Source: Octopus sinensis
Taxonomy: Eukaryota
Direction: 5' to 3'
DNA: 64,000 nt
Assembly: GCF_006345805.1 (NCBI RefSeq)
Contig: NC_043019.1
Coordinates: 3,658,001 to 3,722,000, forward strand
The position numbers and the translations under genes were made by a program. Shown here piece after piece: positions 7,003 to 63,663 of the stretch. How positions within the stretch are numbered: the first letter of the stretch is position 1; each line of letters opens with the position of its first letter. A model generated the notes under the pieces. The model saw nothing but the letters and a program-made list of their open reading frames with translations. It did not search any database and was not told the DNA's origin.

Positions 7003-7734
7003 ATTTTAACTCTGAAAAGACTAAAGGTAAAGTTGATATTGATGGGATTTCAACACTGCAGAGGTAGTCTGCCCAGTTCCCTCACTGTTATTTGAGCTTA
7101 TTTAAAACTGTCCTATTTATTATTATAGGTTAGTAATGTAAGAAGAGTTGAGCTAGCATGTAAAGTATAGTCGTACTCTGCGGCTGCTGTTAAGTTAGAT
7201 TTAATTTTTATGAAGTCAACTTGTAATTTGTGCCAAGAAAGTGTTGTTTATAACATGCAGCTATACTGCGGTACCATCATTATGGTTCATTCATCATCAT
7301 CATCATTTAATGTTTATTTTCTATGCTGGCATCAGTTTATTTGACAGGGGCTGGCCAGTTGAGCAGCTGCATCAGGCTCAAACTGTCTGTTTTGGCGTGA
7401 TTTTTATGGCTGGATACCCTAACTAATGTCAACCTCTTTTATAAAGTGTACTGGGTGCTTTTTACGTGGTACCAGCATGAGAGGTGCAGGCATGGCTGTG
7501 TGGTTAGGAAGCTTGCGTCTCAACCACGTGGTTTTGGGTTCAGTTGGGCTGACCGAAGCCTTATGATTGAATTTGGTAGGTGGAAGTTCCTGTCTTGTGT
7601 ACATAATTGTGTGGAAGTGCTTCTGCCTCTCAACCATTTAGCATTTAAACCAGCTACATCTGGCCAAAATATTCCACCTGTTTTAGATTCAAACTGGCCA
7701 GATCTAGCCCCTCACGCACCTTCTACATCATAAA

Positions 7735-8200
7735 AAATAAATAAAATAATGAAATTATTGTATACAGTGCTCAGGTGCACCACAACTTGTCAAAAGTGCG
7801 TATAAAGTATATGCAGTAATGTACAAATGTCTGGGAAGGGAACAGTGTATGAGTCACGTACATGCTTGCGTGTGTATGGAGGGGAGAAAATCAGGTGTAG
7901 TGTTGGCGAATCTCAGGAAGCATGGAAGTTTTTGAAGGATGCAGTGCTCTAACAACTGATGCTGGCAGTTTGTTCCATGCTTCAGCAACTCTTAGCGTGA
8001 AAAAATGTTTCCGAAAGTCATGGGAGCTGTGCTGTTTTCTGACTTTGTAAACATGTCCACGGGTGTTAGACAGATGGAGTTTGAAAAGGTGCTCAGAATT
8101 ATTGTTTGTAAGATGGTTAATAATTTTATGGGTGTCTGCCAAATCAGCTGCCAGACGTTGGAGTTTCAATATATCCATGCCCAGGGAAGTAAGGCCTTCA
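7735..8200 (-). mobile_element. CR1-type LINE 3' fragment
   Basis: LKLQRLAADL..HKIINHL..TRGHVYKV..FFTLRVAEAWNKLP, the typical CR1/L2 ORF2 C-terminus. Confidence 0.85.
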
Positions 8201-8718
8201 GAATATCATTCTAATAATAAAACTACATAAAAAAAATCTCAAAGTTACTCAAGATAATGCATGATTAATTCAAACCAGTATGAATAAACATCACTTTTGC
8301 AGAGTAAATCTGAATGTTAAAGGGTTAACAGATAGTACAATACATATCACTCTTATTTGACTATTAAGTACTTTGTTGTTAGGGAATAGCTGTAATAATG
8401 AAAATTTGAAGAATGGATAAACTTGACAATTATCCTCTTCAAAATTAAATAAATTTTGTGCTTGTATAGTGTTATCAACCCATTTCATATTTTCTTAACC
8501 ATTTTGATCATAACTGGAATGCCTTTGACCACAGTCTTACTGGATCAGGGTTGATGTGGAGTTACAGGTTATGTGCCTGTGTGTGTATGTGATCCTGATC
8601 AACTAACCAGCTTTGTGATCATTCATGTTCTAGTCCCCCCAGTTTTTTCTTTTGAACATTTGTGGAATTTGAGGTAGATTTTGGTACTATATCTACTAAG
8701 TCAGATGATATTGTAGAG

Positions 8719-10944: not shown

Positions 10945-11542
10945 CCCCTTTTGTTACTGTATTTATTTTGAGATGCTCTGTGTTTCTTTCAAATAATTTT
11001 AAATATAACAAAGAATTTAGTAAAATAACTTTCTTATCATTAACCCTTTCATTACTGTATTTATTTTGAGATGCTCTGTGTTTCTCTCAATTACTTTAAA
11101 TATAACAAAGAATTTAGTAAAATAACTTAGTTATCATTAAGCTAGTGTTAGGAACTTAAATTGTGACTAAGGTTTGGTGGAAGATTTTAATTCAAAACTT
11201 ATGAAAACAAGAGGTTTGTCCTCAGAGCCAAAGCTGGTTTCAGCTGGGTTGGTAACAAAAGGGTTAAGCTAGTGTTAGGAACAGTATTTGTGACTAAGGT
11301 TTGGTGGAAGATTTTAATTAAAAACTTATGAAAACAAGAAATTTGTACTACAGAGCCGGGTTGGTAACGAAAGGGTTAAATATAACAAAGGATTTAGTAA
11401 AATAACATAGTTATCATTAAGCTAGTGTTACAAACATAAATTGTGGCTAAGGTTTGGTGGAAGATTTTAATCCAAAACTTATGAAAACAGAGCATTTTAC
11501 TCAGAGCCAGAGCCGGTTTCAGCTGGGTTGGTAACGAAAGGG
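10945..11542 (+). mobile_element. MITE family 1 compound: copy 11044-11263 nested in another copy, plus a duplicated right half
   Basis: TTAA at 10941, 11040, 11264, 11376 and 11543; the host resumes exactly (tatcaTTAA..TTAAgctagtg). Confidence 0.85.
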
Positions 11543-12479
11543 TTAAGACGGTGCTCCTGCCAGGCTGCAGTTAAATGACGGACTGATGAAGCAAAAGGCA
11601 GAGAATATAGTCTCCTAAAATAATACCATCCCATTCTTACTTTTAAAGAACAATTTACTTGGATAAATATATAAATATTACTGCAATTAGCTTCATTTTC
11701 ACAAAGCCATCTCAATACTACACTTCAATGTCTGTCCTTGTCAGGCAATTATTTCTATCTGTTACTCTTAATTGACGTGAGAATATTTATATTTTCTCTA
11801 AATTATGACAGTTATTTCATTGTTGATGATTGAAACACATTTAACCTATGTAGTATATAAGTTGACTGCCACTTTATACCTTATATTTGTCTGTCTAAAG
11901 TTAGTTGTTCTTTCTAAATTTCTAGCTCAGTTATTAAATACCAGATAAAACAGAATGTAGGGCGACCACCAGTGGTGGCCTACCTTGGCGAGACTGGTAT
12001 TAATTTGGGAAAAAGCCCTGAAGTGGAGTTTCCAATGTTTTGGTCATTTCTTCGGAGTTGAGATAACAGGGGGAGTTTTACATTCTTTGTTTAACTGGAA
12101 TGTATATTTACTCAGTGTATTTTTTTTGACTTGCATTATCATGTAGCTTCAAGATTTCAGTGTGATTGTTTATTTTTAGGATGACATTGTAGGATAGGTG
12201 TGAGAAGCTGAATCTAGTCAGTTTGAATGTAGAACAATATTTTGGTCCGGATAGAGCTGGTTTAAATGCTAAAGGGTTAAGCAATTGGTTGTGACTGATA
12301 GGAACACAAAACCTGACTGGTTACATCAATGGCTCTCAACTGGACTCCATATGGCCCTTGGTGGGGTCCACATAAGATTTTATTGCTAAAATTTGTGCAA
12401 TAAACTGGTTATATTTCTACAATACACTAGAATAGTTTAACAATTTTTTAATATTATGAAAATATAGGATTTTTTTTAA

Positions 12480-13709: not shown

Positions 13710-15454
13710 TTTAGTCCAAAATTTCAGAAACTCTATTCTCCATGGTAATATTGACTTTTTCTGCCACTTTCCATTAACAGCAACATATAACATATAACTG
13801 GAAGTTGTGGATATTGCGATAAAGTACTTAATAAAAGGGCTACCAGCAATATTTAGTAATTCTTCTTTAAAAAAAATGTTTTTCAGTATTTTATACTTGG
13901 TAAGGATTCACATATGTTTTTATTAATTCCTCAGAATTTTGAGCAAGTTTTTTAACATTTCAAAAACAAAATTAACTATGAAACAAAATTTGTAAATAAA
14001 ACAGGGCATATTAGCATTGTCTGTATAAAGACCTGAAGAAATCTTAAATAAGAAAATTAGGAGCATATAGCTAAAATTGTAGAAGTATTCTGCACTTTAA
14101 TCCTTCCATTATTGTTTCTAACCAAGTTCCATGTTTCAGTTTTATTTCCTTTACAATTACTTGTGGCTGAACTGAAAAACTAGGGGGAAAAAAAAAAATA
14201 AAATAAAAGCCCTTGGTTATGGTATGGAAGTGATAAGGCCAACATCATCATTTAATGTCTGTTTTCCATCTATCCTGGGTTGGATGGTTTTGACTGAGGG
14301 CTGGCAACCAGATGGCTACACCAGGCTCCAGTCTTGATCTGGCAGAGTTTCTACAGCTGGATGCCCTTCCTAACGCCAACCACTCCGAGAGTGTAGTGGG
14401 TGTAGTCTTCTACTATAGCCTCGGGCCAACCAAAACCTTGTGAGTGGATTTGGTAGACGGAAACCGAAAGAAGCCCGTCATATATATGTATATATGTGTT
14501 TGTTCCCCCTAGCATTGCTTGACAACCGATGCTGGTGTGTTTATGTCCCCGTTACTTAGTGGTTCGGCAAAAGAGACCGATGGAATAAGTACTGGACTTA
14601 CAAAAGAATAAGTCCTGGGGTCGAGTTGCTTGATTAAAGGCAGTGTTCCAGCATGGCCACAGTCAAATGACTGAAACAAGTAAAAGAGTATATGTATATA
14701 TGTGTGTGTATGTATGTATATATATGTATATATATATATATATATATGTATGTATATATATGTATATATATAGAGAGAGAGAGAGTGTGTGTGGCAGCTT
14801 GGTAACGATACCAAGAATGTAATATACTAATATTGTAGCAACTGTTTATACTGTGACACCTAACCACATTGCTAGGTATGTAAGTACAAGACAATCTAAA
14901 GACTGTCTTTCAGCAATACAATAGTGCTGAATAATAATTCCCCAGCATCTACGTGCATTTGTGCATGTGTAGGCTGCTCTCATCCCATCTGTTTTGGTTT
15001 CTTTATTTAGATGACAAGACAGAATCTCAACAGACATATAGAGATCTTATATTCAGTGAAAATTGATAGTTACATAGTCTAACACAAATCAAAACCTGCA
15101 TAAATAAAGCCACTCTGTAAATATATACTTTAAACTTTGAAATCTATTCAGTTCATAATTCCAGTTCTTTGTTCATGTAATAAGATTAATGTAAATATAC
15201 TAAAATATCACATTTTATAATCGTTGAAAATAGTACTAGTAATAATTAGCAGTATTATTTTATCAATACCAAACATCGTAAAGGTTAAATTTCGGTGCTA
15301 AAACAAGTAACTTCTAGACTGCCATTCCACTTGCTAGAAACACCAACCAAATCCCCCTCAAACTACAATCACTTCTAAAATGTAAGAAATATATATTTAG
15401 GATGCCATAGTTTGAATCCATATTTTAAACGAATGAAATGATCATATATGGAAT

Positions 15455-15759
15455 TCTCTTGACCATATGTTCCTTCTCAAGCCATGCCTGGCTCATAAGG
15501 GCTGATTTCCCGGTTTCCTTGGCAAATAGATTTCCCCCACCTGGACGGGACGCCAGTCCGTCGCAGGTGAGCTGCAAGATGCAGGAGGAAAGAGTGAGAG
15601 AAAGTCGTGGCAAAAGAGTCAGAAGTTCGCCATTACCTCCTGCGAGAGCCGCCTGGAGCTTAGGTAATTCGCTCATAAACACACACCACCGCCCGGTCTG
15701 AGATTCGAACCCGCGATCCCTCGACCGCGACTCCGCTGCTCTAACCACTAGGCCATGTG
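15455..15759 (-). mobile_element. tRNA-derived SINE with a V-domain-like core
   Basis: A box TGGCCTAGTGG, B box GGTTCGAATC, core CCTGCGACGGACTGGCGTCCCGTCCAGG; related degraded copy near 20.1-20.25 kb. Confidence 0.7.
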
Positions 15760-16238
15760 AGTGGATTTGGTAGATGGAAACAGGATGGAATAAAGATTTT
15801 AAAAAGTAGTTTTCTTTAAGATTTTGTCAGAAGAGATTCAACTCCATTAGAGCCTTTCCAATAAATCAAAATCTAAATATTTATACAGAATATTAAAAAA
15901 TGGGAAAAAATTTGGTGTTTACATTCTTAGAGGAAATACGCTATAAACAATAATCCCTCGCTATATCGCAGTTCACCTGTCACGATTTATCATTTAAGCA
16001 TACGGAGATTCCTCTGTAGTGTAGAATTGCATTTATAATAAAATATACAAATTATAAAAAAAAAGTATGCAGTAACAGTACTGTTTCTACTTCATGAATT
16101 TTCACCTATCAGAGGGTTTTGGAACGTAACACCTGCAGTAGTCGAGGGATTACTGCACAGGCATTACTATAGCAGTGGGACTGAACCCGGAACCATGTGG
16201 TTGGTAAGCAAGCTACTTACCACATAGCCACTCCTATG

Positions 16239-16290
<52 letters not shown>

Positions 16291-16480
16291 TCAGTTTTTT
16301 CTGTAGATTTTTACTTGATGACACGTGGATAGGCAGGGAAAGGTGATGAACCTCATTCGTATATTCTGGGATTCGGCGGTACTGGACATTGAATGTAGTT
16401 TGTCTAAATTCTGTTGGTTGGAAAGGTACATTCGATTCTTCCAGTGCCCCTGGATTTAATATTATATTATATTGTGAAGT

Positions 16481-16564
16481 CCCATACTGAAGAGGAAAGT
16501 GTTCCGGGTAAAGTATAAATTCTACATTCTTTATACCGAACTAATTCTGAAACGCGTACATGGG
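16481..16564 (+). ncRNA. type I hammerhead ribozyme fold with canonical core, of the kind associated with Penelope-like elements
   Basis: CCCAT-a-CTGAAGA (16487-93); stem II GGAA../..TTCT with an extended interrupted hairpin; GAA; palindromic ACGCGT (16552-57); A; c-ATGGG closing stem I. Confidence 0.7.
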
Positions 16565-16754
16565 TAATCAAATATCGATTGATTTTCGTTATTCTTCATC
16601 TCTGCCTACGAGGATTGTTTTCGAGTACTTTGTTTTTGTCCAGGAATCTCTCTTTAAAGTAGAGGAAATAGCTAAGGTTCACTGGCTGCTATTTCTAAAC
16701 TTCTGTATGTGGCAAAGCAAATCTTTGCTGAGCCCTAATTTTTTTTATTTTTTA

Positions 16755-17130
16755 CTTCTAACGTCCGTTTTCCGTGCTAGCACGGGTTGGACGGTTCGAC
16801 CGGGGTCTGGGAAGCCAGGGGCTGCACCAGGCTCCACTCTGATCTGGCAGAGTTTCTACAGCTGGATGCCCTTCCTAACGCCAACCACTCCTCGAGTGTA
16901 GTGGGTGCTTTTTACGTGTCACCTGCACAGGTGCCAGGGGGGTCCGGCATCGGCCACGATCGGTTGGTGCTTTTAACGTGCTACCGGCACTGGAGTCAGT
17001 CGAGGCGGCGCTGGCATCAGCCACGTTCAAATGGTCCTTTTTATGTGCCACCGGCACAAGCCAGTCGAGGCGGCGCTGGCAACGGCCATGTTTGGATGGT
17101 GCTTTTTATGTGCCACCGGCACGGGTATCA
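16755..17130 (-). mobile_element. family C retroposon
   Basis: As above. Confidence 0.8.
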
Positions 17131-17894
17131 CAACTAAAAAATATATATGCAGCTAAGAACAGTTTCCAGTATGTAATTTGATAAATCAGGATTTAAGCTA
17201 CACATACTGTAAATGTTATTTTAACCCTGTTAATACCAACTTGCACAAGACTGCCACGGATTCTATGTTATAAACTTTGTTTTAATTCAACATTCATATT
17301 AGTCTGTCAAATGTAATGCTTATTTATTCACATTGTTATGAGGTAATCATGCATCATCTTCTAGCTTTGAGATTTTTGGATTGACATGGAGTGGGCATGA
17401 GAAATGGGGTTCTTTGGGCTGGATATGGCCGGTTTAAATGCTAATGGGTATAATCACATCATTGAAATCTGAAAGCTACAAGATAATGCATGTTTAATTG
17501 CAAACATTATCAGTAAATAAAGCATTGCATTTGATGGAGAAATATGAATGTTAAAGGATTAATTCAAACAAAGGCATTGTCTTTCAGCAGAAATATAAGG
17601 AATTACTGAGATGTACTTGCATAGCAAGTGACCTGACCTGATCTGAGATTGTGTGCTGGAACGAAAACAATTGCAACGTGAAAGGTGTTTATAAGTCATT
17701 TAAGAAACACACAAAATCCGTTAGATTCACTTCAACATTTGAATTTAATTTGTCAAAATATTTTCGTCGCTTTGAGACCACGACAGCTCGGAATTTTGTC
17801 AGTGAACAGGTTGTGGTCTCAAAGCGACAAAAATATTTAGACAAATTAAATTTAAATGTTGAAGTGAATCTAACGGTTTTTGCGTGTTTCTTAA

Positions 17895-18977
17895 CCCTTT
17901 CGTTACTATATTTCTGACCAAATTACACCCCTTATGTGTTTCAATTAATTTCTAACGTAATCATAAATTTAGTCTGGTTTCATTAAACAACTATAACTTT
18001 TTTATTTATCAATATATTAATCTGATTTTTGGAAGATGATTTAATGAAATATTCTCAACCAATTCTATACTATAATTTTTGTCACAAAGTGACTCTATTT
18101 GCAGGTAGATACAGGTAAATTCCACAAAATATAAAATTATTAAAATTTTGTTCAAACATCGCTATAGAAAATATTAGCTAATATTCAATTGGGTATACAA
18201 CAAAATTTTACGATAGAATTTGTTATTCTGGGTAACTTTCTGATACCCATAATAATATTTATGGCAAAATAGGCCTTAATTTCATTTAAGGTTGTGGGAA
18301 ATAACAAACTATCCTTTCTTTCGTTTTGTTTATGTTTAGCGTAACGGTTCGTTTTCGCTGTAATGATTTCAAATAGGCTCATTCGAAAAAGTAAATAGAA
18401 ATAGCCTAAGGCTTTACCCTTCTGGGAAAGTCTGTGGCTTGGTCCAGTTTCTGCAGAAAAATCACCGAAAGAAACAGTTTTTAAATTTTCACTCCATTCA
18501 GGTGCCAATTCGTTTTCTTTATCGCTATCGGAGATCTCAGATTCACTGTTTTCACTTTCGGAAAATGAAACATCAAATTCATTATCAAATACCATGTGCT
18601 TTTTTTTTTCAGTCATAGAGTTAGATTTATGAAGGTCTTCAGTAGAAAATCCTTCGAATTCTGACTCGCTGCTTGCTTATAATGAAATTCGTATCCATTT
18701 TTTGTCAGAATTACAAATTTTGAAAACACAATAGGAACAAATTTCGGAAAAAAATCTCCCAAAATTCACGGAATTAAAATTACACTTCGATTATTGTACA
18801 AAACTGTAGTTGAACTGTTTACGAAGTATAATACGTGTTTTCACGAATGTACTGAAGAGATTTGCTCTGATATTATCATTTAAATATGAATAGGTAAATT
18901 CGGGCGGCTTTGGGCGGTTTGGTTTCATGAACCAAAATTTTTTTCGGGCGGCTTTGGGCGGTTTGGTAACGAAAGGG
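17895..18977 (-). mobile_element. internally deleted piggyBac transposon (1083 bp)
   Basis: 12-bp perfect TIR CCCTTTCGTTAC; TTAA at 17891-94 and 18978-81; 24-bp subterminal direct repeats at 18900-23 and 18944-67; transposase remnant inside. Confidence 0.92.
18215..18698 (-). pseudogene. piggyBac (PGBD/DDE_Tnp_1_7-type) transposase N-terminal fragment, frameshifted near the start and truncated before the DDD core
   Basis: SSESEFEGFSTEDL acidic N-terminus followed by YFYLLF..IITAKTNRYAK..TTLNEIKAYFAINIIMGIRKLP, typical of piggyBac transposases. Confidence 0.88.
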
Positions 18978-19689
18978 TTAAATGGCTTATAAACACCTTC
19001 CACGCTGCAGTTGTTGTATAAGAAAGGAGTTAAGTTTTTAAGTTTCGACATCTTCCTTTTGCAATAGAATGTTTTAGCTTTTTTCCTCACCTGTGCAACT
19101 ACATACAGTATGCTTAATGATAAAATAGTTAGTAATTATACTCTAATGAATGATGATGATGCTGGTCTGAATTTGGTGTGATCACAACAATTTACATTTG
19201 TGGAATAAATAACTGTAGCCACATCCAGGGTCTAGAAACAGAGAGATAGTTCCTGTTCAGATTTCTATATAACTAATCATGTGTACTGAGCAGCATGGTC
19301 CTTAGGTGGGACATTTTCATCAGCCTATGTCTAACATAGTACACAAGGAGAGATAATTTTTTTTTTTTTTTCCCTTTGAAGTGATAGTTTTTACAGATGG
19401 CTTGTTGCCCTGGCTGTTTATGAAACACTCAACTATAAAAAGTACATCTACCAGGAGTGGTCTGGTTTTATTTGTCAGGCAAAGTAGAGCAAGCGTTTGT
19501 GTGAATGCTTGATTGCTCAAGTACACAACACACTGACTATAATATCTGAATTTAAGATTGATCATGTTTTTTTTAACAAATATAACCACATGACCCTTTT
19601 TTCAAAGCTAATCCCTTTCAAGGACTACAACAAATTTTGTTGCATACCCGACTGAATATTAGGTGATGATTCATTTTCTATGGTGATGT

Positions 19690-19945: not shown

Positions 19946-21020
19946 TTAATGTTATGATGTATAATTATAATTATGGTAAAGAATACTTTACAAGCATTCA
20001 CAGATCCTAAATAAAACAAAAGTAATTTCAGAAAAGTGACCTTTTGAACTTTTACCAGGTGTAGGCCTGTAAGGTTAAGGTGCATGACTTGGTAGTTAGG
20101 ACACTATACTCCTGCTCACAAGATTGTAGTTTTGATTCCCGGAATAGGCAAGCTGTTGTGTTCTTGAGACAAACACTTTTGTTTCACATAGCTCAGGCCA
20201 CCCAGCTGTACATGAGTAACCCTGTGATGGACTGGTGTCCTGTTCATGGGGGGTAATTCACTTTTTAACATTTAAACCGGCAATATCTGGCTCAAATATT
20301 CTACCTGCCTTTTGTTGAAAGTGACCGGATCTGGCCTATCACACCTACACACTACAATGTCACTCGGTTGTCGTCCTGGTTATTTATACCTCATAGAAAC
20401 TGGCCCTTTTAAGTCCTAGGACTGAAGATAGTAATGTCCAGTGGTTGATGATATGCACATGTAAAAGTATATCTGCTGTATAAAAAGTTAATGTAGCAAC
20501 ATTTACCTAATTGAGCCCCCCTCACTAGAAAATCGATGATGCTGTGTTTAATTTTACATTTGTTTTTTTCCTCTATGTTGTGTAGATTTAAAATCCTTCT
20601 AAACACATTTTTTAATATATTTTTTCTTAAGTCTTAGGATTTTAATTTGAACATCAGGCATTTGGATCTGGCAAAACTTTGCTTTAATTATGCGTTGTGT
20701 AGTTTAATATAATTTTACAACTGTCTACAATAATGCCTTGTTATACGAGTTAATTCGTTCCTGGAGAATGCTTGTAGAGTGAAAACTCGTAAAGCGAGGT
20801 ATTATTGTATATTGATCTAACATTGATGAATGATATATATATATATATATCGGCGGTGCATCAGCATGGCCGCAGCTCTGAGCTGAGACTAGAGAAGAAA
20901 AAAAAATATATATATATATATATATATGTAAGGGAAAGTTTACGAAAATAAACGAAAGACGAAGGCAGGTGGATTACAAACAAACAAATGTATTAGTATA
21001 GCGCTCAGGAATAGAAAAAG

Positions 21021-21470: not shown

Positions 21471-21947
21471 AACCACCATACTCTGCCAATTCTCTAAAAG
21501 AATTGGCTGGCTTGGTATTATTATTATAGAAGAAAAGTACTTATCCGAGATAAAGTGTAGGGCTGGACCTGTAATCGTGGTTGCAAAGTTAGCTTCTTAA
21601 ACACACAGATGCCTGTGCCTTTTGTATATACACAAGCTAGATATGCAATGGCATATAAATGGAAACGAAATACCTCCTGTTTTTGTTTTCCATTTTGGTT
21701 TTATTTGACCTGAATTACTTTGATGCCAGTCAAGTGGTAAACAACGTTGATTGATATAATTTGATGTGGACACACTTATGTAGAAATGTTTGTTATGAAT
21801 TTCATAGATGTAACATTATTATTATAATAATTTAAATTCTTCATGACACATCAGTTAGTATGGATAACATGTATAACTTCTGCCATCTTGAATAAGGCCA
21901 ATTTTCTTGGAACTAGAAAATTAGGTCATATTTCATCATCCTTTAAA

Positions 21948-22627
21948 CCCTTTCATTACTGTATTTATTTTGAGATTTTCAGTGTTTCTCTCAGTTATTT
22001 TAAATATAACAAAGAATTTAGTAAAATAACTTAGTTATCATTAATCTAGTGTTAGGACCATAAATTGTGACTAAGGTTTGGTGGAAGATTTTAATTCAAA
22101 ATTTATGAAAACAAGACATTTGTACTACAGAGCCGGGTTGGTATCAAAAGGGTTAAAGAAAACAAAGAATTTAGTAGAATAACTTAGTTATCATTAATCT
22201 AGTGTTAGGAACATAAATTGTGACTAAGGTTTGGTGGAAGATTTTAATTCAAAATTTATGAAAACAAGACATTTGTACTACAGAGCCGGGTTGGTATCAA
22301 AAGGGTTAAATATAACAAAGAATTTAGTAGAATAACTTAGTTATCATTAATCTAGTGTTAGGAACATAAATTGTGACTAAGGTTTGGTGGAAGATTTTAA
22401 TTCAAAATTTATGAAAACAAGACATTTGTACTACAGAGCCGGGTTGGTATCAAAAGGGTTAAATATAACAAAGAATTTAGTAGAATAACTTAGTTATCAT
22501 TCAGCTAGTGTTAGGAACATAAATTGTGACTAAGGTTTGGTGGAAGATTTTAATTAAAAACTTATGAAAACAAGACATTTGTACTACAGTGCCAGAGCCG
22601 GTTTCAGCTGGGTTGGTAACGAAAGGG
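21948..22627 (+). mobile_element. MITE family 1 with four tandem right halves (153, 153, 153 and 169 bp)
   Basis: TTAA at 22000, 22153, 22306, 22459 and 22628; a single left end. Confidence 0.88.
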
Positions 22628-22984
22628 TTAACGTCTATCTTCCATGCTGGCTATGGGTTAGAGCTGGCCAGATAGAAGACGATACCAAGCTACTGTTTGT
22701 TTTCTCGTGGTTTTTATGGCTGGATGCCCTTTTTAACACCGATCTTTTAGAGTGGACTATGCTTTTTGTATGGCACTAGCACAGGCAAGGTCAGTTTTGG
22801 CATGGTTTTACAGCTGGATGACCTTCCAAAATGCCAGCCACTTTACAGTGTGGCCTGGATACTTATGTGGCACCAGCTCCAGCAGGGTCACCATTTCTCA
22901 TGTATAATGTATATTCTTAGTTTTAGGGCTAAAAATTCAGGAGGGTAAAGTGTGATGTGTTTCATATACGCTTCAGTTTTAGAT

Positions 22985-34044: not shown

Positions 34045-34162
34045 ATGAATGCACACAAGAAAATATGGGATGTTGAAGATGATGGTAAGAGTCAAGAAGC
34101 AAACAAGGGTATTTTTTCAAGTAGCCCTTGGACACCACGTGATAACACCTGGAGCACTGCAG
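34045..34162 (+). CDS. pum: pum exon (118 nt): MNAHKKIWDVEDDGKSQEANKGIFSSSPWTPRDNTWSTA
   Basis: ttcattag|ATG acceptor, GCAG|gttag donor; resembles PUM1 KKFWETDE..KGIF..WRDSAWGT. Confidence 0.93.
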
Positions 34163-36095: not shown

Positions 36096-36286
36096 ATCAT
36101 ACTGTATCTCAGCCATTAAGTGTTGTTCAAAGGCGTGCCAGTAGTTTTACTAACAATGAAGTGAACAGTGTACTTTCTCCTCGTTCAGAAACCAATGCCC
36201 TTGGTGTAAATATGGTGGAATATGTGTTAAACAGTTCCCCGACAGGAAAAGATCTTAACCCTAGAATGAATAGATTAAAAAATTTT
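36096..36286 (+). CDS. pum: pum exon (191 nt): [64 protein letters not shown] (first conserved N-terminal motif)
   Basis: Polypyrimidine tract-tctag acceptor, TTT|gtaagt donor; strong match to PUM1 [38 protein letters not shown]. Confidence 0.97.
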
Positions 36287-38024: not shown

Positions 38025-38173
38025 TCAGATGCTTCAATGGACAATTCTAATGATAAAAAAAGCAAAACTCCATCTCCGTTTGAAGCAGGGGATGGTAGTG
38101 ATCTGGAGAAACAGGATGCTTTACAAACAAATGGAATCCTTCAAAACGGATTAGATGAAGACGACGGATATCG
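38025..38173 (+). CDS. pum: pum exon (149 nt): SDASMDNSNDKKSKTPSPFEAGDGSDLEKQDALQTNGILQNGLDEDDGYR
   Basis: caacag|TCA acceptor, CG|gtaagt donor; phases 0 and 2 fit the neighbours; TNG..QNG matches PUM1 TNGLPVQNGID. Confidence 0.93.
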
Positions 38174-39348
38174 GTAAGTTACTATAATTTGGTGTTGTTG
38201 TTCACTCTGTAACACTAATGCTTAAGAGTACCTTGTAAAGTTAAACGAAGAATTTTAATATGATTTTAATCAATGGAAAATGTACTGAGTCCTGTATTTG
38301 ATGGTATAAAAGAAGCACAGGCATAGAAAATGTGCCCCACTTCAGCAGTACATCATGTTTTCTATGCTGGCATGGGTTGGACAGCTTGATAAGTTGGCAA
38401 GCTGTAGGGCAGCACTAAGCCCCCGTCGTCTGTTTTTGCATGGTTTCTAAGGTTTTTGATGCCCTTCCTAAAGCCAACTATTTTATAGTGTATTGGGTGC
38501 ATCATCTCCTTAATGTCTGTTTTCCATGCTGGTGTGGGTTGACCAGGGCTGGAGAACTGCACCAGGTTCCAGAATGATTTGGCTTGGCTTCTATGGCCAG
38601 ATGCCCTTTCTAATGCCAACCACTTTACAGTATGTGCTGGGTGCTTTTAATCTGACACTGGCGTGAGTAGTGCTTTTTATGTGGCACAGAACTCCCGCAG
38701 GCCGATCTGCTACACAAGAATGCAAGTTATATGCCATGAAACACAGTATACTTGTACTGAACTTAAAAGATCATCATTTGTTTGTAGCTTATAGCCTCAT
38801 CTTGGGAGAAAAGATCTGTATAAATTTTGGGGAAGACTTCCTTGAAGGGGTCAGATTTATGATATCTTCTCTAGGACCATAGAAAGACTCGAACTCTGCT
38901 CTACAAGTTGACAGATATTGTTCCATACAGTGGTGCCTATTTGCAATTGGATAGACTGAGCTGTCTTTATTTTGGACAAGTGCAGCATCGCCAGAGGTGC
39001 AAATGACCATATTTCATGGTATAAAAGAGGCACACAGGTGTATTAGACAGATCAATCAATTTCTACAGCACATGTTCAAGGAGAAAGTTTGTAACATATT
39101 AATGCGTGTAATATCTAAATGCTTAGCGGTTTTTCCTCTGCCGTTATGTTCTGAGTTCAAATTCCACCATGGTCGACTTTGCCTTTCATCCTTTTGGGGG
39201 TCGATAAATTAAATACCAGTTACGCACTGGGGTCGATGTAATCGACTTAATCCCTTTGTTTGTCCCTCTATGTTTACCCCATTGTGGGCATGAAAAAAAA
39301 ATATCTAAAGCATTTTAGCATATAGGATGAGCAGTGGATTTTTTTTAA

Positions 39349-39570
39349 CCCTTTCGTTACTGTATTTATTTTGAGATGCTCTGTGTTTCTTTCAATTAAT
39401 TTTAAATATAACAAAGAATTTAGTAAAATAACTTAGTTATCATTCAGTTAGTGTTAGGAACATAAATTGTGACTAAGGTTTGGTGGAAGATTTAAATTCA
39501 AAACTTATGAAAACAGGACATTTGTACTACAAAGCTAGGGCCAGTTTCAGCTGGGTTGGTATCAAAAGGG
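39349..39570 (+). mobile_element. MITE family 1 monomer
   Basis: Same termini and body as the 31060 copy. Confidence 0.85.
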
Positions 39571-40322
39571 TTTAAGCCCTTTTCCTGATAATAGGGTATT
39601 TTATGCCAGCGTTATTGTTTAATGTCTGTTTTCCATACTGGCATAGTTTGGATGGTTTGAGAAGAATTAGCCACCTGGAGAGCTGTGCAGGCTCCAGTTA
39701 TGTTTTGGCATGGTTTTTACAGATGGATGCCCTTCCTAACGCTAACCATTTTTCATGGTGTGCTGAGTGCATCATTCGTGGCACTGGCACAAAAACAAAG
39801 GCCCCTTGGCGAGGGAATGGAGTGGGGGCATGGCCATAAGGGACATGCTTGTATGGCTATGATTTTACTTGGTGTGTCTTCTCCAGTACAGCAAATCACC
39901 AGAGGTCTTGGATTTCTCAACTGGGATCCGTATAAGATTGCCAGGTGGTTGTGGTGGTGTCCAGATGCAATATAATAAATTGAGGGGCCACAGTAATTTT
40001 TCGGGGGACATGAAAAAATTTTGTGTCAGACCCGTGAAGTTTATGTGCAATAAATTGGTTAAATGTCCACAATACACAAAATATTTTAATTTTTATACAA
40101 GTCCTAATATTTAATTATAAATAGGATTTTTTAAACATTGAATGTCCACTTAAGTAAAATAGGAATCATGGGGGTTCATAGGTAAGGAATGGTTGAGAAG
40201 CCCTGTTCTAAAAGAAATAGCTTATTTCCCTCATTTTGGACCTAACCATTTTAAAATAATGGAAGGCATGTTAGAGAACACAAATATGTGAGGGTGTTGA
40301 CTGGAATGTTTTTGGTCCTAGG

Positions 40323-42177
40323 TCTGTGAATCATCATTTAGTGTCTGCTTTTCATGCTGGCATGGGTTAGACAGTTTGACTGAAAACTGGTAAGCTGGAG
40401 GGTTACACCAGGTTCCAATCTGGTTTGGCATGGTTTCTACAACTGCACGCCCTTTCCAACTGTTACATATTAAAGATGCTTTAGGGTCTCTGTTCCACTG
40501 CGTGACATCCTGGGTAATTAATTGTAAAGGCACTGGCAGCACTGTGGTTCAGAAGTTCGCTTGGCAACCATATGATTTTGGGTTTAGGCCTATGCAGTAC
40601 TTTTGATGATTTTCTTCTGCTATAGCTGCGGGCCAGCCAAAGCAGATTTGGTTAGCAGGAACTGCAAAGAAGCCCATCATGTTTATATATGTGTATATGG
40701 AAGTTGATTTGGGGCATAGACAACAAACTATTTTGTAATTATTGTTCTTCAGTTGTTCTATTATTGTTCTTTTATTACCGTCTTTCATTTGTAAACGATA
40801 AATGCTAATATTTGTGTTATGTATTGAAAACTGCTTTTACATATTTTTCACTTTTAATATACTCTATTGTGTTTATGTACACTGATATTGTACATATTTC
40901 AGCGGAAGCCGCCAGAACTCCCCTATCGATGAAGTGAAGGTGAACCAACCTACCATCTTGGTGGATGGGCAAAAATTGATGAAGTCGGAGTCAGATTTTC
41001 TTGAAGCTCAGCATACTCTGGCTCAACAAGGGTTTCAAATTGATCCTAATACATTTGAGCCTGTTGCTATTGATCCCCTTCATTTTGACTACCCTAATCA
41101 CTTGATGCCATCAATGGACAGTCCAAACTTCAACATGGATTACACTCAGGTATGTTATTGTCCCCTAATTAATTAACTGGGGGTTTTTTTTTCACTTCAC
41201 CTGTCTCATTTTTTTATCCCATCATTGTTGTATCTCATATATGGTCCCTTTATTCTTCATTGTCAGGAAATTTATCAAAGTTTATGGTTAGTCGCGAAAA
41301 AGTTTTGATTTTAAAGTTGCATGGTCATGTATTGATGCTTGGCTTCCCAATCATGTAGCCATTAGTTCAATCCCATGGCACGGCACTTTTAACAAGTGTT
41401 GTCTACTACAGCCCTAGGCTGACCAAACCCTTGTGAGTGGATCTGGCAGGTGGAAATTGAAAGAAGCTCATATTGTATATTTGTGTGTGTGTGTAGACAT
41501 TACATGATGGTTGAAAATGAGCATCAAAGCTAGGCTGTTCATTGCAGTCTTCCATGAGAAACCTCTCTAGCAAGGGGTGGGGGAATATTGCCTTGCTCAG
41601 AAACAGGTAGGGGTTGGTGACAGGGAAGATAATCAGTTGCAGAAAACTTGCTTCACCAAATTCCGATTGATCCATTCATGTATAAAATAATGGATGTTGA
41701 ACAACAATGAAGAATTGGAAATCAGTTGTACTCAGTGAAGTTGTCATGTCTTTAGGGGCCACCATTTAAAGTGTAATTTTTAAAATCAGATTTGTCCTTA
41801 TATCTGTGAATCATCATTTAGTGTCTGCTTTTCATGCTGGCATGGGTTAGACAGTTTGACTGAAAACTGGTAAGCTGGAGGGTTACACCCGGTTCCAATC
41901 TGGTTTGGCATGGTTTCTACAACTGCACACCCTTTCCAACTGTTACATATTAAGATGTTTTGGGTCTCTGTTCCACTGCGTGGCATCCTGGGTAATTAAT
42001 TGTAAAGGCACTGGCACCACTGTGGTTCAGAAGTTTGCTTGGCAACCATATGATTTTGGTTTCGGTCCTATACAGTACTTTGGATGATTGTCTTCTGCTA
42101 TAGCTGCGGGCCAGCCAAAGCAGATTTGGTTAGCAGGAACTGAAAAGAAGCCCATCATGTTTATATATGTGTATATG
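40323..42177 (+). repeat. about 376-bp direct duplication (40323-40699 and 41803-42177) flanking the 40903 exon
   Basis: Near-identical sequence including the junction between two old SINE fragments. Confidence 0.92.
40903..41149 (+). CDS. pum: pum exon (247 nt): GSRQNSPIDEVKVNQPTILVDGQKLMK..DPLHFDYPNHLMPSMDSPNFNMDYTQ
   Basis: tttcag acceptor, CAG|gtatgt donor, phase 2-0; DPLHFDY resembles PUM1 EPLQFDY. Confidence 0.94.
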
Positions 42178-43087: not shown

Positions 43088-43163
43088 TATAAAAATTGTA
43101 TGTATGTATTTGTACTTTTGTTATTGTATAAAGTTCTATATTGGACTCTAATCTATTTTTCAG

Positions 43164-43242
43164 CTTCTTCAGCGTCAACAACAGCCTATTGCAGTACTCA
43201 CACAGCAACAGTATGCTCTGGCTGCCCAGCAGCAGCAATTAG
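43164..43242 (+). CDS. pum: pum exon (79 nt): LLQRQQQPIAVLTQQQYALAAQQQQL
   Basis: ttttcag acceptor, AG|gtatgc donor; matches PUM1 LFQRPN..QQQQYALAAAHQPHI. Confidence 0.94.
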
Positions 43243-47865: not shown

Positions 47866-48697
47866 ATGCTTGTGTGTATATATATATATACATATATATA
47901 TATATGTTTCTTTGTTTGTTTATATGTATGTCTATATCTATGTGTGTTTGTGTATGCGCATGTGTGTATATATATATATTTTGATGTATGTATATATATA
48001 TCTATATATGTGTGTATGAGCGTGTGTGTATGTGTGCATGTGTATCCGTTTGTGTGTGTGTGTGTATATATGTATGTATATAACATTACATAATAAGGGT
48101 AGAAATTGATATTAATCAATTAAAACCAGTGGCTTAGAAAATTTAAAAATCCAAAGATTAAACATTTTATTACATACAAAATTAAGGATGACCTCTAAAG
48201 TGGACACCTAATATGTTAAATATAGATGTCAAATCGCCATTACCATGAAGTGTGTGTTCTCGAGAAATTTTTTTTAGCAGAACTCCAAAATGAGCAAGAC
48301 AAATGAAAATATACAAAATAAAAAAGGATTACCTACGTACCATGGTTTCATTTGTTACTTAGCAAAGTAGGAGTCCCCTTCAGTGGCCATTCCTGTAAAT
48401 TTTGTATGTATATATATATTTACGTATTTTGTATGTATATATATATATATGTATGTATATATGTATGTATTTACATCAACGTACATATATATGTATGTGT
48501 GTGTGTGTATGTATATATGTATGTATTTACATCTACGTACATATATATGTATGTGTGTGTGTATGTATATATGTATGTATTTACATCTACGTACATATAT
48601 GTGTGTGTGTGTGTATATATATATACGTACGTATGTATACATACATGTATGTATACATATCTATCTACTTCTGTGTGTGTGTGTGTATATATATATG

Positions 48698-50972: not shown

Positions 50973-51560
50973 CCCTTTCGTTACTGTATTTATTTTGAGA
51001 TGCTCTGTGTTTCTTTCAGTTATTTTAACCCTTTAGCATTTAAACCGGCCATATCCGGCCAAAAGTATTCTGCCTGTTTTATGGTCAAACTCGCCAGATC
51101 TGGTCTCTCTGTTTTAAAAATTAACAGCTACCTCATCAAAATCTCATAGCTACAAGATTAATGAATGATTAATTCAAAACAATGTGGATGAAGAAGCATT
51201 AATTTTGGCAGAATAATGCGAACACTAAAGGGTTAAATATTACAAAGAATTTAGTAAAATAACTTAGTTATCATTCAGCTAGTGTTAGGAACGTAAATTG
51301 TGACTAAGATTTGGTGTAAGATTTTAATCCAAAACTTATGAAAACAAAACATTTGTACCTCAGAGCCGGTTTCAGCCAGGTTGCTATCAAAAAGGTTAAA
51401 TATAACAAAAGAATTTAGTAAAATAAGTTATCATTCAGCTAGTGCTAGGAACGTAAATTGTGACTAAGGTTTGGTGGAATATTTTAATTCAAAACTTACA
51501 AAAACAAGACATTTTACCACAGAGCCAGAGCCGGTTTTGGCTGGGTTAGTAACAAAAGGG
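50973..51560 (+). mobile_element. MITE family 1 with duplicated right half and a nested family-2 MITE (51029-51232)
   Basis: TTAA at 50969, 51025, 51233, 51396 and 51561. Confidence 0.85.
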
Positions 51561-52541
51561 TTAAAGTTGACGATGTCAACTGTCAAAATAACTAAAATGC
51601 TGTAAACTGCATGGACTCATTTTTTTGTTTCTTCTCTTTCTCTCAACTGACAAAAAAAAATTTTAAACTGAAGCATTGCATTGGAACTTGCTTGGATGTA
51701 ACAGAAAGAACCAAAAAAAAAAAAAATTTTTTTTTTTGTTTTGTAATCTAGATGTAATTTAGTAACGATGAGATATTTTTTTATATTTATATTCTTCCCT
51801 CAAATTTTTCCCAAAGAAAGAAAGATGAATGAAAAACAAAAGACAGCCCACAATAAAGCAATAGTTTATTTATCACATTGCTTCCTCACTCATCTGATTT
51901 GTAAAAGCTCCAATTAACATTGATTGCTACTTCTATGTGTGTATGTATATATATATACATATATATATGCACACACATACACACAAACTATATAGCTAGT
52001 TTGCTTGTTTTCCGCTAATTAGTAGCAGCAAAATTTCTCTTTTGCAAATTTATTACTAATTGCTTTTTTTTTTCTTGGTATTTAAATTTAACCTTGCAGT
52101 AGTTTAAAAATTTAAACTTTATTTTTTTACAATTTCATAAAATGAATGTTTTTTTTGTTCATTGCATGCTGTAAGACTACCATTACTAATTCTTTTTTTT
52201 ATTTACTAATTTTCATGTTAATTGAATAACACTTATTTGATCCATTAGTTTTTATTGAATAATATTTAAGTATTAAGAATTTTTAATATGGTTTATTTTG
52301 GTTGTGGCCATATTCCCCTGAATCTCTCTCTAGTAAACTGATGTGTTTACTAATTGGAAAAAGCCATTCTAATGAGCTCGTTACATTGTATCTTGCCCTT
52401 TGTCATAGCTTGTACTTATACAGTAAAAGAGAAAATATTCCAAATGTCTCAAATAGATGACATTCAGGAAAATTCTTAAAAGGTTTCAATTAGTAAAATT
52501 TGAAAAGATTACTGTTAAAAATTTGATATGTTGATGTAGAG

Positions 52542-56668: not shown

Positions 56669-56772
56669 TATACTTTGTTAGATTAAGTGTTATTTATCAC
56701 ATAAATGACTGAATCTATATGTAAATGTTGAAAGAGATGTCATCGATGTATTTGTTCTGTGGTTTTGTTCAG

Positions 56773-57018
56773 GTCCTGCTGTCATCCATCCTCAATACTA
56801 CAGTGTACAAGCTCCTTGGTTATATCCAGCTAATTTGATTCAACAAGGGCAACAGCCCCACCCCGGGGCTGCTGCCCAGTCCGCTGCTGCTGCTGCACTC
56901 AGTCAGCAGCAACAACAACAACTATTGCGCGGTCAGTCTGGACGACCTGTTACTCCTCAACAGCAAAGTGAAAATATACCTGCATCTGCTCTTCAAGCAC
57001 AAGCATTACAGACTCCAA
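56773..57018 (+). CDS. pum: pum exon (246 nt, phase 1-1): GPAVIHPQYYSVQAPWLYPANLIQQGQQPHPGAAAQSAAAAALSQQQQQQLLRGQSGRPVTPQQQSENIPASALQAQALQTP
   Basis: ttgttcag acceptor, CCAA|gtaaga donor; matches PUM1 [24 protein letters not shown]..RPLTP. Confidence 0.96.
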
Positions 57019-57074
57019 GTAAGATATTCAAAGGTCTTGTTGTTATATCAGGAAATATTTAATTGGAGAAAAAT

Positions 57075-57995
57075 GTATTGTGTGTGACTATGGAGTGTAA
57101 ATGTTATACTGTCTGTTATATAGCAAGTCTCTTGTGTGACTGTATGCAGTGTAGATGTCATACTGTCTACACATCATATAGCAAGTCTCTTGTGTGACTG
57201 TATGCAGTGTAGATGTCATACTGTCTATATTATATAGCAAGTCTCTTGTGTGACTGTATGCAGTGTCAATGTCATACTGTCTATATTATATAGCAAGTCA
57301 CTTCTGTGACTGTATGCAGTGTCAATGTCATACTGTCTATATTATATAGCAAGTCACTTCTGTGACTGTATGCAGTGTCAATGTCATACTGTCTATATTA
57401 TATAGCAAGTCACTTCTGTGACTGTATGCAGTGTCAATGTCATACTGTCTATATTATATAGCAAGTCTCTTGTGTGACTATGGGGTGTCAATGTCATACC
57501 GTCTATATTATATAGCAAATCCTGTGTGGCCCTGTGTGGTCTAATAAAGCTGTATAGCAAATCTCTTGTGACTGTATGGAGTATGTTATACTGTCTCTAT
57601 TATATAGCAAGTCTGTGTGACTGTATGGAATGTAAATGTTTATATTACATAGCAAGTCTCTGACTTTTTGGGGTATATATATATTTCTTTACTACCCACA
57701 AGGGGTTAAACACAGAAGGGACAAACAAGGACAGACAAATGGATTGTCGATTACATCGACCCCCAGTGCATAACTGGTACTTATTTAATCGACCCCGAAA
57801 GGATGAAAGGCAAAGTCGACCTCGGCGGAATTTGAACTCAGAACATAACAGCAGACGAAATAAGGGTACGCATTTTGCCCGGCGTGCTAACGTTTCTGCC
57901 AGCTCGCCGCCTAAATGGGGTATAAATGTTATGCTGTCTGTATTATATAGCAAGTCTCTTGTGTGACTGTATGGAGTGTAAATGTTATACTTTGG
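57075..57995. repeat. 56-bp minisatellite, about 11-12 units, split by a SINE
   Basis: GCAAGTC recurs at 57181, 57237, 57293, 57349, 57405 and 57461. Confidence 0.9.
57683..57912 (-). mobile_element. SINE family B monomer inserted in the 56-bp minisatellite
   Basis: As above; tggggtata on both sides. Confidence 0.85.
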
Positions 57996-58072: not shown

Positions 58073-58213
58073 ATGCTCCAGGTTACCAATTCTTGGCTAC
58101 TGCATATTATGATCAAAATGGACAGCTAGTGATGGGTAATCCTCGAGGGATCGGTACACCTGTCAGGTTGGTTTCACCTGCTCCAGTTTTGGTGAATACA
58201 GGTAATCAGCAAG
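58073..58213 (+). CDS. pum: pum exon (141 nt, phase 1-1): NAPGYQFLATAYYDQNGQLVMGNPRGIGTPVRLVSPAPVLVNTGNQQ (second conserved N-terminal motif)
   Basis: Poly-T then cttttcag acceptor, CAAG|gtaggt donor; matches PUM1 PGYPVLAPAAYYDQTGALV..GAPVRLVAPAPV. Confidence 0.97.
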
Positions 58214-58767
58214 GTAGGTGTTGATTAAATCTATTATATTTCATTTTGTTTTTATTTATATGTAATTTACATACTTGGATAATAAGTGGTAGAAGATTAT
58301 TGGATAATCACCTGAAGGGTTAATATTTCCACCACATATATACTTATAACCAAATTGACCACTTTGGCCAGTTGCAGTAGTGTGTTCTACTGTGTTACAA
58401 AACTCACAGGTATGACAAAATGGGTTTTGAGCTGATACTCCATCCCGACATGATCATGACCAGATTTTTCTGAAGTGATAAGATTGCCATTAATTTATCT
58501 GAATAGACAAAGTTTTGACTAGGTAGAACTTTGTAATTTAAAAAACAAAGTGAAAATAAATGTAAACATCGTCACAATCTTTCCAAATCTTGCTGCATTT
58601 CACATGGAATTTTTGGTCCTTCAAAGTCTTGTTGGTGTATAAGTTGGTTTATCTTTATCTTGGCTTTAGATTTTGTCTGCGAAATTTGACTTGTAAATGC
58701 TGGAAAATATGGTAATAAAAGGCTTGATGCTTCAATTAAGATGGCAGTATAAAAATAGTTATCCTCT

Positions 58768-59955: not shown

Positions 59956-60099
59956 GTAATGCTAATTCAATCAGCAATAACCAATTACGACTGTTGACCA
60001 CACAAGCCCAACAGGCTCAGACTCCTCCTGTCATTTATTCTAGTAACAACTCTAGCAACAGTGCCACACCCCAGCAAAACAATACCCTTGGTGGAAGTG
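59956..60099 (+). CDS. pum: pum exon (144 nt, phase 1-1): GNANSISNNQLRLLTTQAQQAQTPPVIYSSNNSSNSATPQQNNTLGGS
   Basis: tttag acceptor, GTG|gtgagt donor; Q/N/S-rich low-complexity composition and correct phase. Confidence 0.88.
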
Positions 60100-60604
60100 G
60101 TGAGTACTTTAACCCTTTAGAATTTCACTCTTTAACATGTAGATGACTCTGTCAAAGGTAATGCTTATCCCCCTATATCTCTAATCTTTCAAGCTTATCA
60201 ACTGGCACAAAGCCCTCCTCCTTTCCTATTGCGCCGTCTTCCCAAGTGAGGTGTCTTTGTTTTGTAAGTTACTTGGTGGTCCTATCAGTGCTGGTACCAT
60301 TTACAAAAAACACTCAGTACACTCTGTAAAGGGGTTGGTGCTAGGAGGGGCACCCAGCTGTAGGAACCAACCCAAAGCAGACGATTGGGTCCTGGTGCAC
60401 CTCCTGGCTTTACCAGATCCTGTCAAACTGTCCAGTCCGTGCCAACATGGAAACCAGAATGTTAGATGATGATTTGTGGTAAGGCTATGTGTGAGAGGCC
60501 AGATCTAGTCCATTTGAGCATAAAGCAGAATATTTCGGCTGGATATGGCTGGTTTAAATGCTAAGAGTTAAAACAACCTTATCTGGCCTATTATTCAGTT
60601 TTTA

Positions 60605-61821: not shown

Positions 61822-63663
61822 ACTCTTTACTCCTTTCAGTCATTTGACTGCGACCATGCTGGAGCACCGCCTTTGGTCGAGCAAATCGACCTCGGGACTT
61901 ATTCTTTGTAAGCCTAGTACTTATTCTATCGGTCCCTTTTGCCGAACCGCTAAGTGATGGGGACGTAAACACACTAGCATCAGTTGTCAAGCAATGCTAG
62001 AGGGACAAACATATACACACACAAACATATACACACACAAACATATACACACACAAACATATACACACACAAACATATACACACACAAACATATACACAC
62101 ACAAACATATACACACACAAACATATACACACACAAACATATACACACACAAACATATACACACACACAAACATATACAACACACACAAACATATACACA
62201 CACACAAACATTACACACACACAAACATATACACCACACACACACATATACACACACACAAACATATACACACACACACAAACATATACACACACAACAA
62301 CATATGCACACACACAACATATGCACACACACACAACATATGCACACACACACATATGCACACACACAAAACATATGCACACACACAAAACATATGCACA
62401 CACACACACATATGCACACACACAACATATGCACACACACAAAACATATGCACCACACACACATATGCACACACACAAAACATATGCACACACACAAAAC
62501 ATATGCACACACACAAAACATATGCCACACACACAAAACATATGCACACACAACAACATATGCACACACACACAACATATGCACACACACAAACATATGC
62601 ACACACACAAAACATATGCACACACACAAAACATATGCACACACACACCAAACATATGCACACACACAAAACATATGCACACACACAAAACATATGCACA
62701 CACACAAACATATGCACACACACAAACATATGCACACACACAAACATATGCACACACACAAACATATGCACACACACAAACATATGCACACACACAAACA
62801 TATGCACACACACAAACATATGCACACACACAAACATATGCACACACACAAACATATGCACACACACAAACATGCACACCACAAACATGCACACACACAA
62901 AACATGCCACACACACAAACATGCACACACACAAACATGCACACAACACAAACATGCACACACACAACAAACATATGCACACACCAAACATGCACACACA
63001 CACCAACATGCACACACACAAACATGCACACACACAAACATGCACACACACAAACATGCACACACAAACATGCACACACACCAAACATGCACACACACAC
63101 AAACATGCACACACCACACAAACATGCACACACACACACAAACATGCACACACACACAAAACATGCACACACACACACACACAACATGCACACACACACA
63201 CAAAACATGCCACACACACACACACAAACATGCACACACAACACAAACATGCACAACACACACAACATGCACACAACACACAAACATGCACACACACACA
63301 AACATGCACACACACACAACATGCACACACACACAAACATGCACACACCACACAAACATGCACACACACACACAAAAATGCACACACACAACAAACATGC
63401 ACACACACCAAACATGCACACACACAAACATGCACACACACAAACATGCACACACACAAACATGCACACACACACGTATATATATATATATATATATATA
63501 TGACAGGCTTCTTTCAGTTTCCGTCTACCAAATCCACTTACAAGGCATTGGTCGGCCCGGGGCTATAGCAGAAGACACCTGCCCAAGATGCCATGCAGTG
63601 GGACTGAACCTGGAACCATGTGGTTGGTTAGCAAGCTACTTACCACACAGCCACTCCTGCGCC
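61822..63663 (-). mobile_element. SINE family A whose internal microsatellite has expanded to about 1.5 kb
   Basis: 3' half at 61822-62005 and 5' half at 63480-63663 flank the satellite. Confidence 0.85.
62006..63477. repeat. CA-rich satellite in three zones (16-, 18- and 16-bp units)
   Basis: CAAACATATACACACA, then CAAACATATGCACACACA, then CAAACATGCACACACA. Confidence 0.95.

Follow-up and report, generated by a model that had tools for sequence, protein, structure and literature searches.

A minimal hammerhead ribozyme motif in an octopus Pumilio intron, probably an impaired relic of a mobile element

The window analysed here is a 64,000-nt stretch of the Octopus sinensis genome (GCF_006345805.1, NC_043019.1, positions 3,658,001 to 3,722,000), and coordinates refer to it unless stated otherwise. 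A Q/A-rich ORF at 56.7–57.0 kb pointed to a 1007-aa Pumilio homologue (P0007), and tblastn with this protein located eight Pumilio coding exons with plausible splice sites between 34,048 and 60,104 (Table 1). These alignments bear out the assignment, made in a preliminary description of the locus, of the + strand as the Pumilio sense strand. A hammerhead-like motif lies on this strand, separated by 17.5 kb or more from the first exon detected downstream of it. The conserved N-terminal exon (aa 1–95 of the homologue, including the SQDDA..YFFQRP block) was undetected anywhere in 1–34 kb; therefore, the start of the gene is probably located upstream of the window, and the motif may lie in an intron other than the first. 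The earlier placement of the motif in the first intron is thus unproven, and the transcription start proposed at 1–2.5 kb is unsupported. Most likely, the motif resides, in sense orientation, in an intron that measures 34 kb or more and is preceded by an exon beyond the window.

Several other features were recorded in the window. Three genomic contigs from a related octopod (L001–L003; Logan SRR11869385, SRR11869390, SRR11869391) match the Pumilio exon at 56.8 kb with 100% identity in protein, and their flanking intron sequence is 77–83% identical to the window. A 56-bp tandem repeat of ~8 units (57059–57535) occupies the Pumilio intron just downstream of this exon. A 153-bp tandem repeat (21847–22746; 4–6 units at 22 kb) has partial copies at 11042–11547, 39348–39689, and 51179–51564, and also in contig L001. 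A CA-rich satellite of ~1.5 kb (61925–63480), built of 16–19-nt units (ACACACAAACATATGC and variants), contains long spurious ORFs on both strands. An ORF at 7894–8205 (−) carries an RGH..K..RK.FF..RV...WN.LP motif reminiscent of how non-LTR retrotransposon polyproteins end at the C-terminus.

Table 1. Coordinates of the hammerhead motif, its surroundings, the Pumilio exons, and the related octopod element
Feature	Position	Strand	Basis or remark
Complete hammerhead-like motif (minimal type I with palindromic helix III)	16481–16564	+	Sequence; sole descriptor match
Helix I 5' strand CCCAU (16481–16485) and A2.1 (16486), mismatched with C1.1	16481–16486	+	
Core C3–A9, CUGAAGA	16487–16493	+	Sequence
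Helix II, 55 nt, interrupted	16494–16548	+	Sequence and folding; stability not above shuffles, z = −1.24
Core G12 A13 A14	16549–16551	+	Sequence
A15.1-CGCG-U16.1, self-complementary ACGCGU	16552–16557	+	Sequence and cofold
A17 (16558), C1.1 (16559), helix I 3' strand AUGGG (16560–16564)	16558–16564	+	Sequence
Single-copy 447-bp segment carrying the motif	16291–16737	+	No second window copy, no Pfam domain; boundaries tentative
(TA)23 microsatellite (perfect run 16241–16286, TATA on to 16290)	16241–16290		5' bound of the hammerhead-bearing segment
Later SINE insertion, poly-T at left end, interrupting 3' part of the segment	16738–17126	−	Self-BLAST, >10 copies
Pumilio coding exons	34048–34152, 36182–36268, 38028–38174, 41030–41152	+	tblastn with P0007
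Pumilio coding exons, continued	43161–43202, 56769–56981, 58078–58215, 59973–60104	+	tblastn with P0007
Decayed, 5'-truncated copy of the L125 unit	48180–48405	−	BLAST; nhmmer E = 9e-10 with L125 query
Hammerhead-bearing 283-bp unit; inverted arms of 44 bp, (TA)n at either side	L125 4449–4731	−	Octopus vulgaris GCA_951406725.2, OX597840.1, ~21.09–21.11 Mb

The motif reads CCCAU-A-CUGAAGA-(55 nt)-GAA-ACGCGU-A^C-AUGGG in the 5' to 3' direction, where the caret marks the predicted cleavage site 3' of A17, between 16558 and 16559. All 13 hammerhead core nucleotides are present in the sequence. Helix I consists of 5 bp (CCCAU/AUGGG). Helix II opens with the closing pairs G-U, G-C, A-U, and A-U (GGAA/UUCU) and continues with three more short helices (GUUC/GAAC, GG/CC, and UAAAG/CUUUA), interrupted by a 3×3 internal loop, a bulge, and a mismatch, and capped by a 15-nt terminal loop. 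The ACGCGU palindrome allows a 6-bp helix III only between two molecules. Two defects adjoin the core, namely, a G16494-U16548 wobble at 10.1/11.1 and an A16486-C16559 mismatch at 2.1/1.1, beside the scissile bond. Compared with a three-helix hammerhead having paired 1.1-2.1 and G10.1-C11.1, the motif therefore shows C-A and G-U at these positions, with helix III intermolecular only. Each detail of the preliminary description (type I, helix II segments, wobble, mismatch, and cleavage at 16558/16559) is present in the sequence. C is usual at position 11.1, and the G10.1-C11.1 pair is highly conserved in hammerheads. CpG decay, as suggested for U11.1, is plausible, given that C11.1 and G12 form a CpG in DNA.

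Minimal type I hammerheads of Penelope-like elements (Cervera & de la Pena 2014, PMC4209133; also Lunse et al. 2017, as cited by PMC6765202) are characterized in the former work by a short helix I, a palindromic helix III, and dimer dependence, with an unpaired nucleotide after A9 and a G10.1-C11.1 pair as further hallmarks. According to the same source, most published copies are solitary, and the lineages are extremely variable within genomes. The candidate shares with them the type I topology, the helix I of 4–5 bp, the palindrome at 15.2–16.2/loop 3 within A15.1-U16.1, the occurrence as a dispersed single copy, and the (TA)n association. In contrast, it carries G10.1-U11.1, lacks a clear unpaired nucleotide after A9, and has a 55-nt helix II with three interruptions in place of a compact one of ~6–8 bp. 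If G16494 is taken as the extra nucleotide, G16495 pairs with C16547, but U16548 then intrudes before G12; in the alternative register, 10.1-11.1 is G-U without an extra nucleotide after A9. The combination of an unpaired nucleotide with G10.1-C11.1 is thus absent in either register. The motif contains no tertiary (loop–loop) contact between helices I and II.

The 447-bp segment that carries the motif possibly forms the body of a non-autonomous element of small size. A tRNA-derived SINE ends at ~16242, directly left of the (TA)23 tract that bounds the segment. We rejected the tract as the tail of this preceding SINE, since other SINE copies end in TGCGCC without TA. The motif begins 195 nt downstream of (TA)23; positions no more than 200 nt downstream of a (TA)≥20 tract make up just 1.3% of the window. 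Penelope-like elements are documented to prefer (TA)n as a target (PMC8557442). On the other side, the interrupting SINE starts 173 nt downstream of the motif; its ORF matches hypothetical proteins of Octopus vulgaris and O. bimaculoides, and when it is taken out, the segment runs on into CTAAAAAATATATATG.

Neither a tandem nor a dispersed second copy of the segment occurs within the window. In this respect, the candidate differs from metazoan non-LTR retrozymes (PMC7229834; bioRxiv 10.64898/2026.07.22.740005), which form tandem arrays with a ribozyme in each unit. Like the candidate, retrozymes are short non-coding mobile sequences with a type I hammerhead and depend on a dimeric or tandem partner, and they are related to Penelope pseudo-LTRs. 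The pseudo-LTR location itself, within an element encoding a reverse transcriptase and a GIY-YIG endonuclease, is not apparent for the motif. A six-frame Pfam scan of 14001–18800 yielded no reverse transcriptase or GIY-YIG remnant, its single match being a piggyBac transposase fragment at ~18.2–18.4 kb (−), and no Penelope ORF or pseudo-LTR was recognized nearby. ARAGORN detected no tRNA-like gene or promoter near the motif. The piggyBac-type ORF fragment extends over 18185–18676 (−) (Pfam DDE_Tnp_1_7, E = 5e-8), and palindromic ORF-like sequences at 17.6–17.9 kb lie close to it.

Five 20-kb pieces of the O. vulgaris genome (100 kb), reached via SINE matches, were scanned with a relaxed descriptor. 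They contained one clean minimal hammerhead, on the minus strand of the piece designated L125 (4599–4664), which reads GCCAUG-CUGAUGA-A-GGC..GCC-GAAA-CUGAUCAG-U-A^CAUGGA. Its helix I has 5 bp, A9 is followed by an unpaired nucleotide, G10.1 pairs with C11.1, and helix III is formed by an 8-nt palindrome; the fold has a z-score of −2.74. The hammerhead belongs to a 283-bp unit (Table 1), which lies antisense in an intron of an O. vulgaris protein-kinase gene; an 85-nt segment (AAGGGTAGAAAT...) is found beyond its left arm. In another O. vulgaris piece, L126, positions 7027–7103 correspond to a mir-9/mir-79 precursor, above the Rfam gathering score on both strands.

The window contains a decayed, 5'-truncated copy of the L125 unit on its minus strand, in which the core is now CUGAAGG and the palindrome CCAUGG. 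This copy adjoins a TG/TA microsatellite and continues to ~48095, with the arm and the AAGGGTAGAAAT segment retained. It shows that hammerhead-bearing elements occur in the genome of the window. Given the clean O. vulgaris unit in 100 kb and the decayed copy in the window, hammerhead elements occur about once per 100 kb of octopod DNA, a density far above that of chance motifs. In addition, GGCCATGCTGATG at 20857–20872 (−), between two (TA)n tracts, equals the 5' half of the L125 hammerhead. Neither GAAA nor the 3' half was found after GGCCATGCTGATG at ~20.87 kb (−), and the site may be a truncated fragment or a coincidence.

The candidate is related to this octopod hammerhead. Outside the core, 16 of 23 compared positions (helix I, 15.2/16.2, A17, and a few flanking bases) are identical to L125, with P = 2.5e-5 against random sequences sampled under the descriptor's own pairing constraints; this comparison has L125 as its one intact relative. 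The matching stretches are CCAU..CUGA and GAAAC..GUA^CAUGG..UAA, and the GUA^CAUGG of the candidate is identical in L125. Octopod DNA totalling 168 kb contains the pattern GAAAC-N(0–10)-GUAC-R-U-R-G three times, once each in the candidate, L125, and the 48-kb copy; ~1 Mb of phage loci contains it nowhere. Both hammerheads lie downstream of (TA)n and have a near-identical helix I and cleavage site. They differ in the palindrome (CUGAUCAG in L125, CGCG in the candidate), in the length of helix II (32 and 55 nt, respectively), and in the helix I 5' strand, which is GCCAUG in L125 (G2.1 paired to C1.1) and CCCAUA in the candidate. L125 has G2.1-C1.1, G10.1-C11.1, and an extra A after A9, none of which the candidate has cleanly.

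The resemblance does not extend to the 283-bp unit outside the ribozyme. The candidate flanks could not be aligned with the L125 unit, pairwise scores being within those of shuffles, and nhmmer with a two-copy profile (L125 and the 48-kb copy) returned nothing at 16.3–16.8 kb at E ≤ 100. A covariance model built from the L125 hammerhead gave the candidate 0.3 bits, largely because its helix II is 23 nt longer and its palindrome shorter. Based on these comparisons, the candidate is not a member of the L125 unit. Instead, we read the two sequences as members of the same broader octopod minimal-hammerhead lineage. The link to Penelope-type minimal, dimer-dependent hammerheads drawn in the preliminary description thereby holds, as shown by the 16/23 match and the presence of such elements in octopod DNA. 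A further covariance-model match at 19273–19332 (−), inside the piggyBac region and without GAAA, was judged to be chance.

Database look-ups for the segment returned no relatives. The look-up of exact ORFs was empty, and a 226-aa peptide query covering several frames of 16220–16770 gave 0 protein-database matches, a weak negative because the very abundant SINE used as a control gave only 7, which marks the database as too sparse in octopod non-coding sequence. Exact and degenerate DNA patterns had 0 matches in viral contigs and JGI metagenomes, collections with little or no octopod non-coding DNA in which the SINE control also gave 0; a looser pattern in the viral contigs retrieved only chance phage matches.

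Taken together, we consider the motif to be an impaired relic of a mobile-element minimal hammerhead, carried as a passenger without a role in Pumilio, at a probability of roughly 0.7. It would stem from short, non-autonomous retroelements, of a kind with Penelope-like elements or retrozymes, that insert into (TA)n in octopods. In an active element, two copies would pair via the palindromic helix III, and each would cut after position 17, trimming the element transcript; dimer cleavage is reported to process the transcripts of known elements (PMC4209133; PMC6765202). A copy would have landed beside (TA)23 in the sense strand of the large Pumilio intron and would later have been interrupted by the SINE. 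Position 2.1 is now A (G in the relative L125), breaking the pair next to the scissile bond, and position 11.1 is U in place of the usual C, consistent with a CpG-type transition. The outcome would be a catalytically impaired passenger with no part in Pumilio expression. Impairment is most likely, judging from the changes at 2.1 and 11.1, the weak helix II, the absence of a tertiary contact, the poor activity of the class, and the lack of a partner. No partner with a compatible palindrome occurs in the window, in which the 48-kb copy is antisense and carries CCAUGG.

A second reading assumes the same origin and a copy that is still catalytically competent as a dimer. At high RNA concentration or in tandem form, it would cleave after A16558, like other Penelope-type minimal hammerheads, yet Pumilio would not be measurably affected, since a lone copy in a nascent transcript would rarely meet a partner. 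GUA is a permitted hammerhead cleavage triplet. The intact set of core nucleotides and the retained G10.1, with a G-U wobble that still closes helix II, also agree with competence. Dimerization is predicted to be favourable (−35.9 kcal/mol for the homodimer versus 2 × −15.8 kcal/mol for separate monomers), with the 6-bp ACGCGU helix III formed in the dimer. However, both the A-C mismatch (1.1/2.1) and the wobble (10.1/11.1) lie next to the active site, the pairing in helix II is weak, no loop–loop contact supports the fold, and published minimal hammerheads cleave poorly even when intact, with very low activity even as dimers (PMC4209133). We regard competence as rather unlikely.

A third reading attributes the motif to chance, with an AT-rich intron bringing CUGAAGA and GAAA together at a spacing that allows weak pairing. 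The thermodynamics lend no support to the motif: the z-score of the whole fold (−0.80) is not significant, helix II alone is no more stable than shuffled sequence, and hammerhead-like conformers make up 1.5% of the monomer ensemble. The 0.3-bit covariance score, the lack of a repeat copy within the window, and the combination of two core-adjacent defects with a loose helix II, which is typical of chance matches, point the same way. An Rfam 15 cmscan at three scales (including 1 kb and 116 nt) returned no hammerhead at the gathering score or at E ≤ 10, but this silence is uninformative, because the clean O. vulgaris hammerhead was equally missed; the Rfam hammerhead models do not cover the octopod minimal class.

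Against chance stand the descriptor counts. The motif is the single match of a type I descriptor on either strand of the window, where 300 dinucleotide shuffles predict 0.007 matches per window, none of them having helix III as a palindrome. First-order Markov sequence amounting to 60 Mb contained 0 equally good and 2 looser matches. These figures are optimistic, because the descriptor was composed after the motif was seen, and a several-gigabase genome would be expected to hold a handful to a few hundred chance matches, so that the counts alone are not decisive. The expectation of at most 0.007 per window is accompanied by the 16/23 non-core identity to a bona fide octopod hammerhead and by the adjacency of (TA)23. 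We conclude that assembly by coincidence is very improbable.

A further reading holds that the motif was exapted as a regulatory ribozyme that tunes Pumilio output by cutting the pre-mRNA co-transcriptionally, a cut that the preliminary description had envisaged. Its sense orientation, likely within the Pumilio transcription unit, would permit this, and intronic self-cleaving ribozymes have precedents (PMC4209133; CPEB3). The amniote hammerheads HH9/HH10 and the mammalian CPEB3 HDV-like ribozyme are likewise sense-strand intronic in protein-coding genes, and the CPEB3 gene, like Pumilio, is a translational regulator. Unlike the candidate, these ribozymes are monomeric, structurally complete, and conserved across species; the candidate has no stabilizing tertiary loops, needs a partner, and carries core-adjacent defects. 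The analogy with CPEB3 is one of position only. The later SINE 173 nt downstream interrupts the element, and retrozymes are reported to be depleted from introns in Xenopus, suggesting selection against genic ribozymes (bioRxiv 10.64898/2026.07.22.740005). With one copy, no compatible partner in the window, two defects, and no tertiary contact, co-transcriptional cleavage is unlikely, as is a regulatory role in Pumilio, and exaptation of this kind is very improbable. Least credible of all is a still-active exapted hammerhead that cuts the nascent octopod Pumilio pre-mRNA, possibly aided by transcript pairing at the locus or by a chaperone.

If such cleavage did take place, Pumilio, a master translational repressor, would be under a ribozyme-based brake in a lineage known for unusual RNA biology. 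Activity of this copy within the Pumilio transcript would make it a remarkable regulatory device, but the evidence speaks against such activity. As an impaired relic, the motif itself is ordinary, in that many animals are known to have dimer-dependent minimal hammerheads dispersed by Penelope-like elements, and decayed solitary copies are to be expected in introns. The literature searched contained no mention of cephalopod hammerheads, and standard annotation will not report the octopod minimal hammerheads, because the Rfam models miss this class. The most useful product of the analysis is that octopod genomes carry short (TA)n-targeting hammerhead units.
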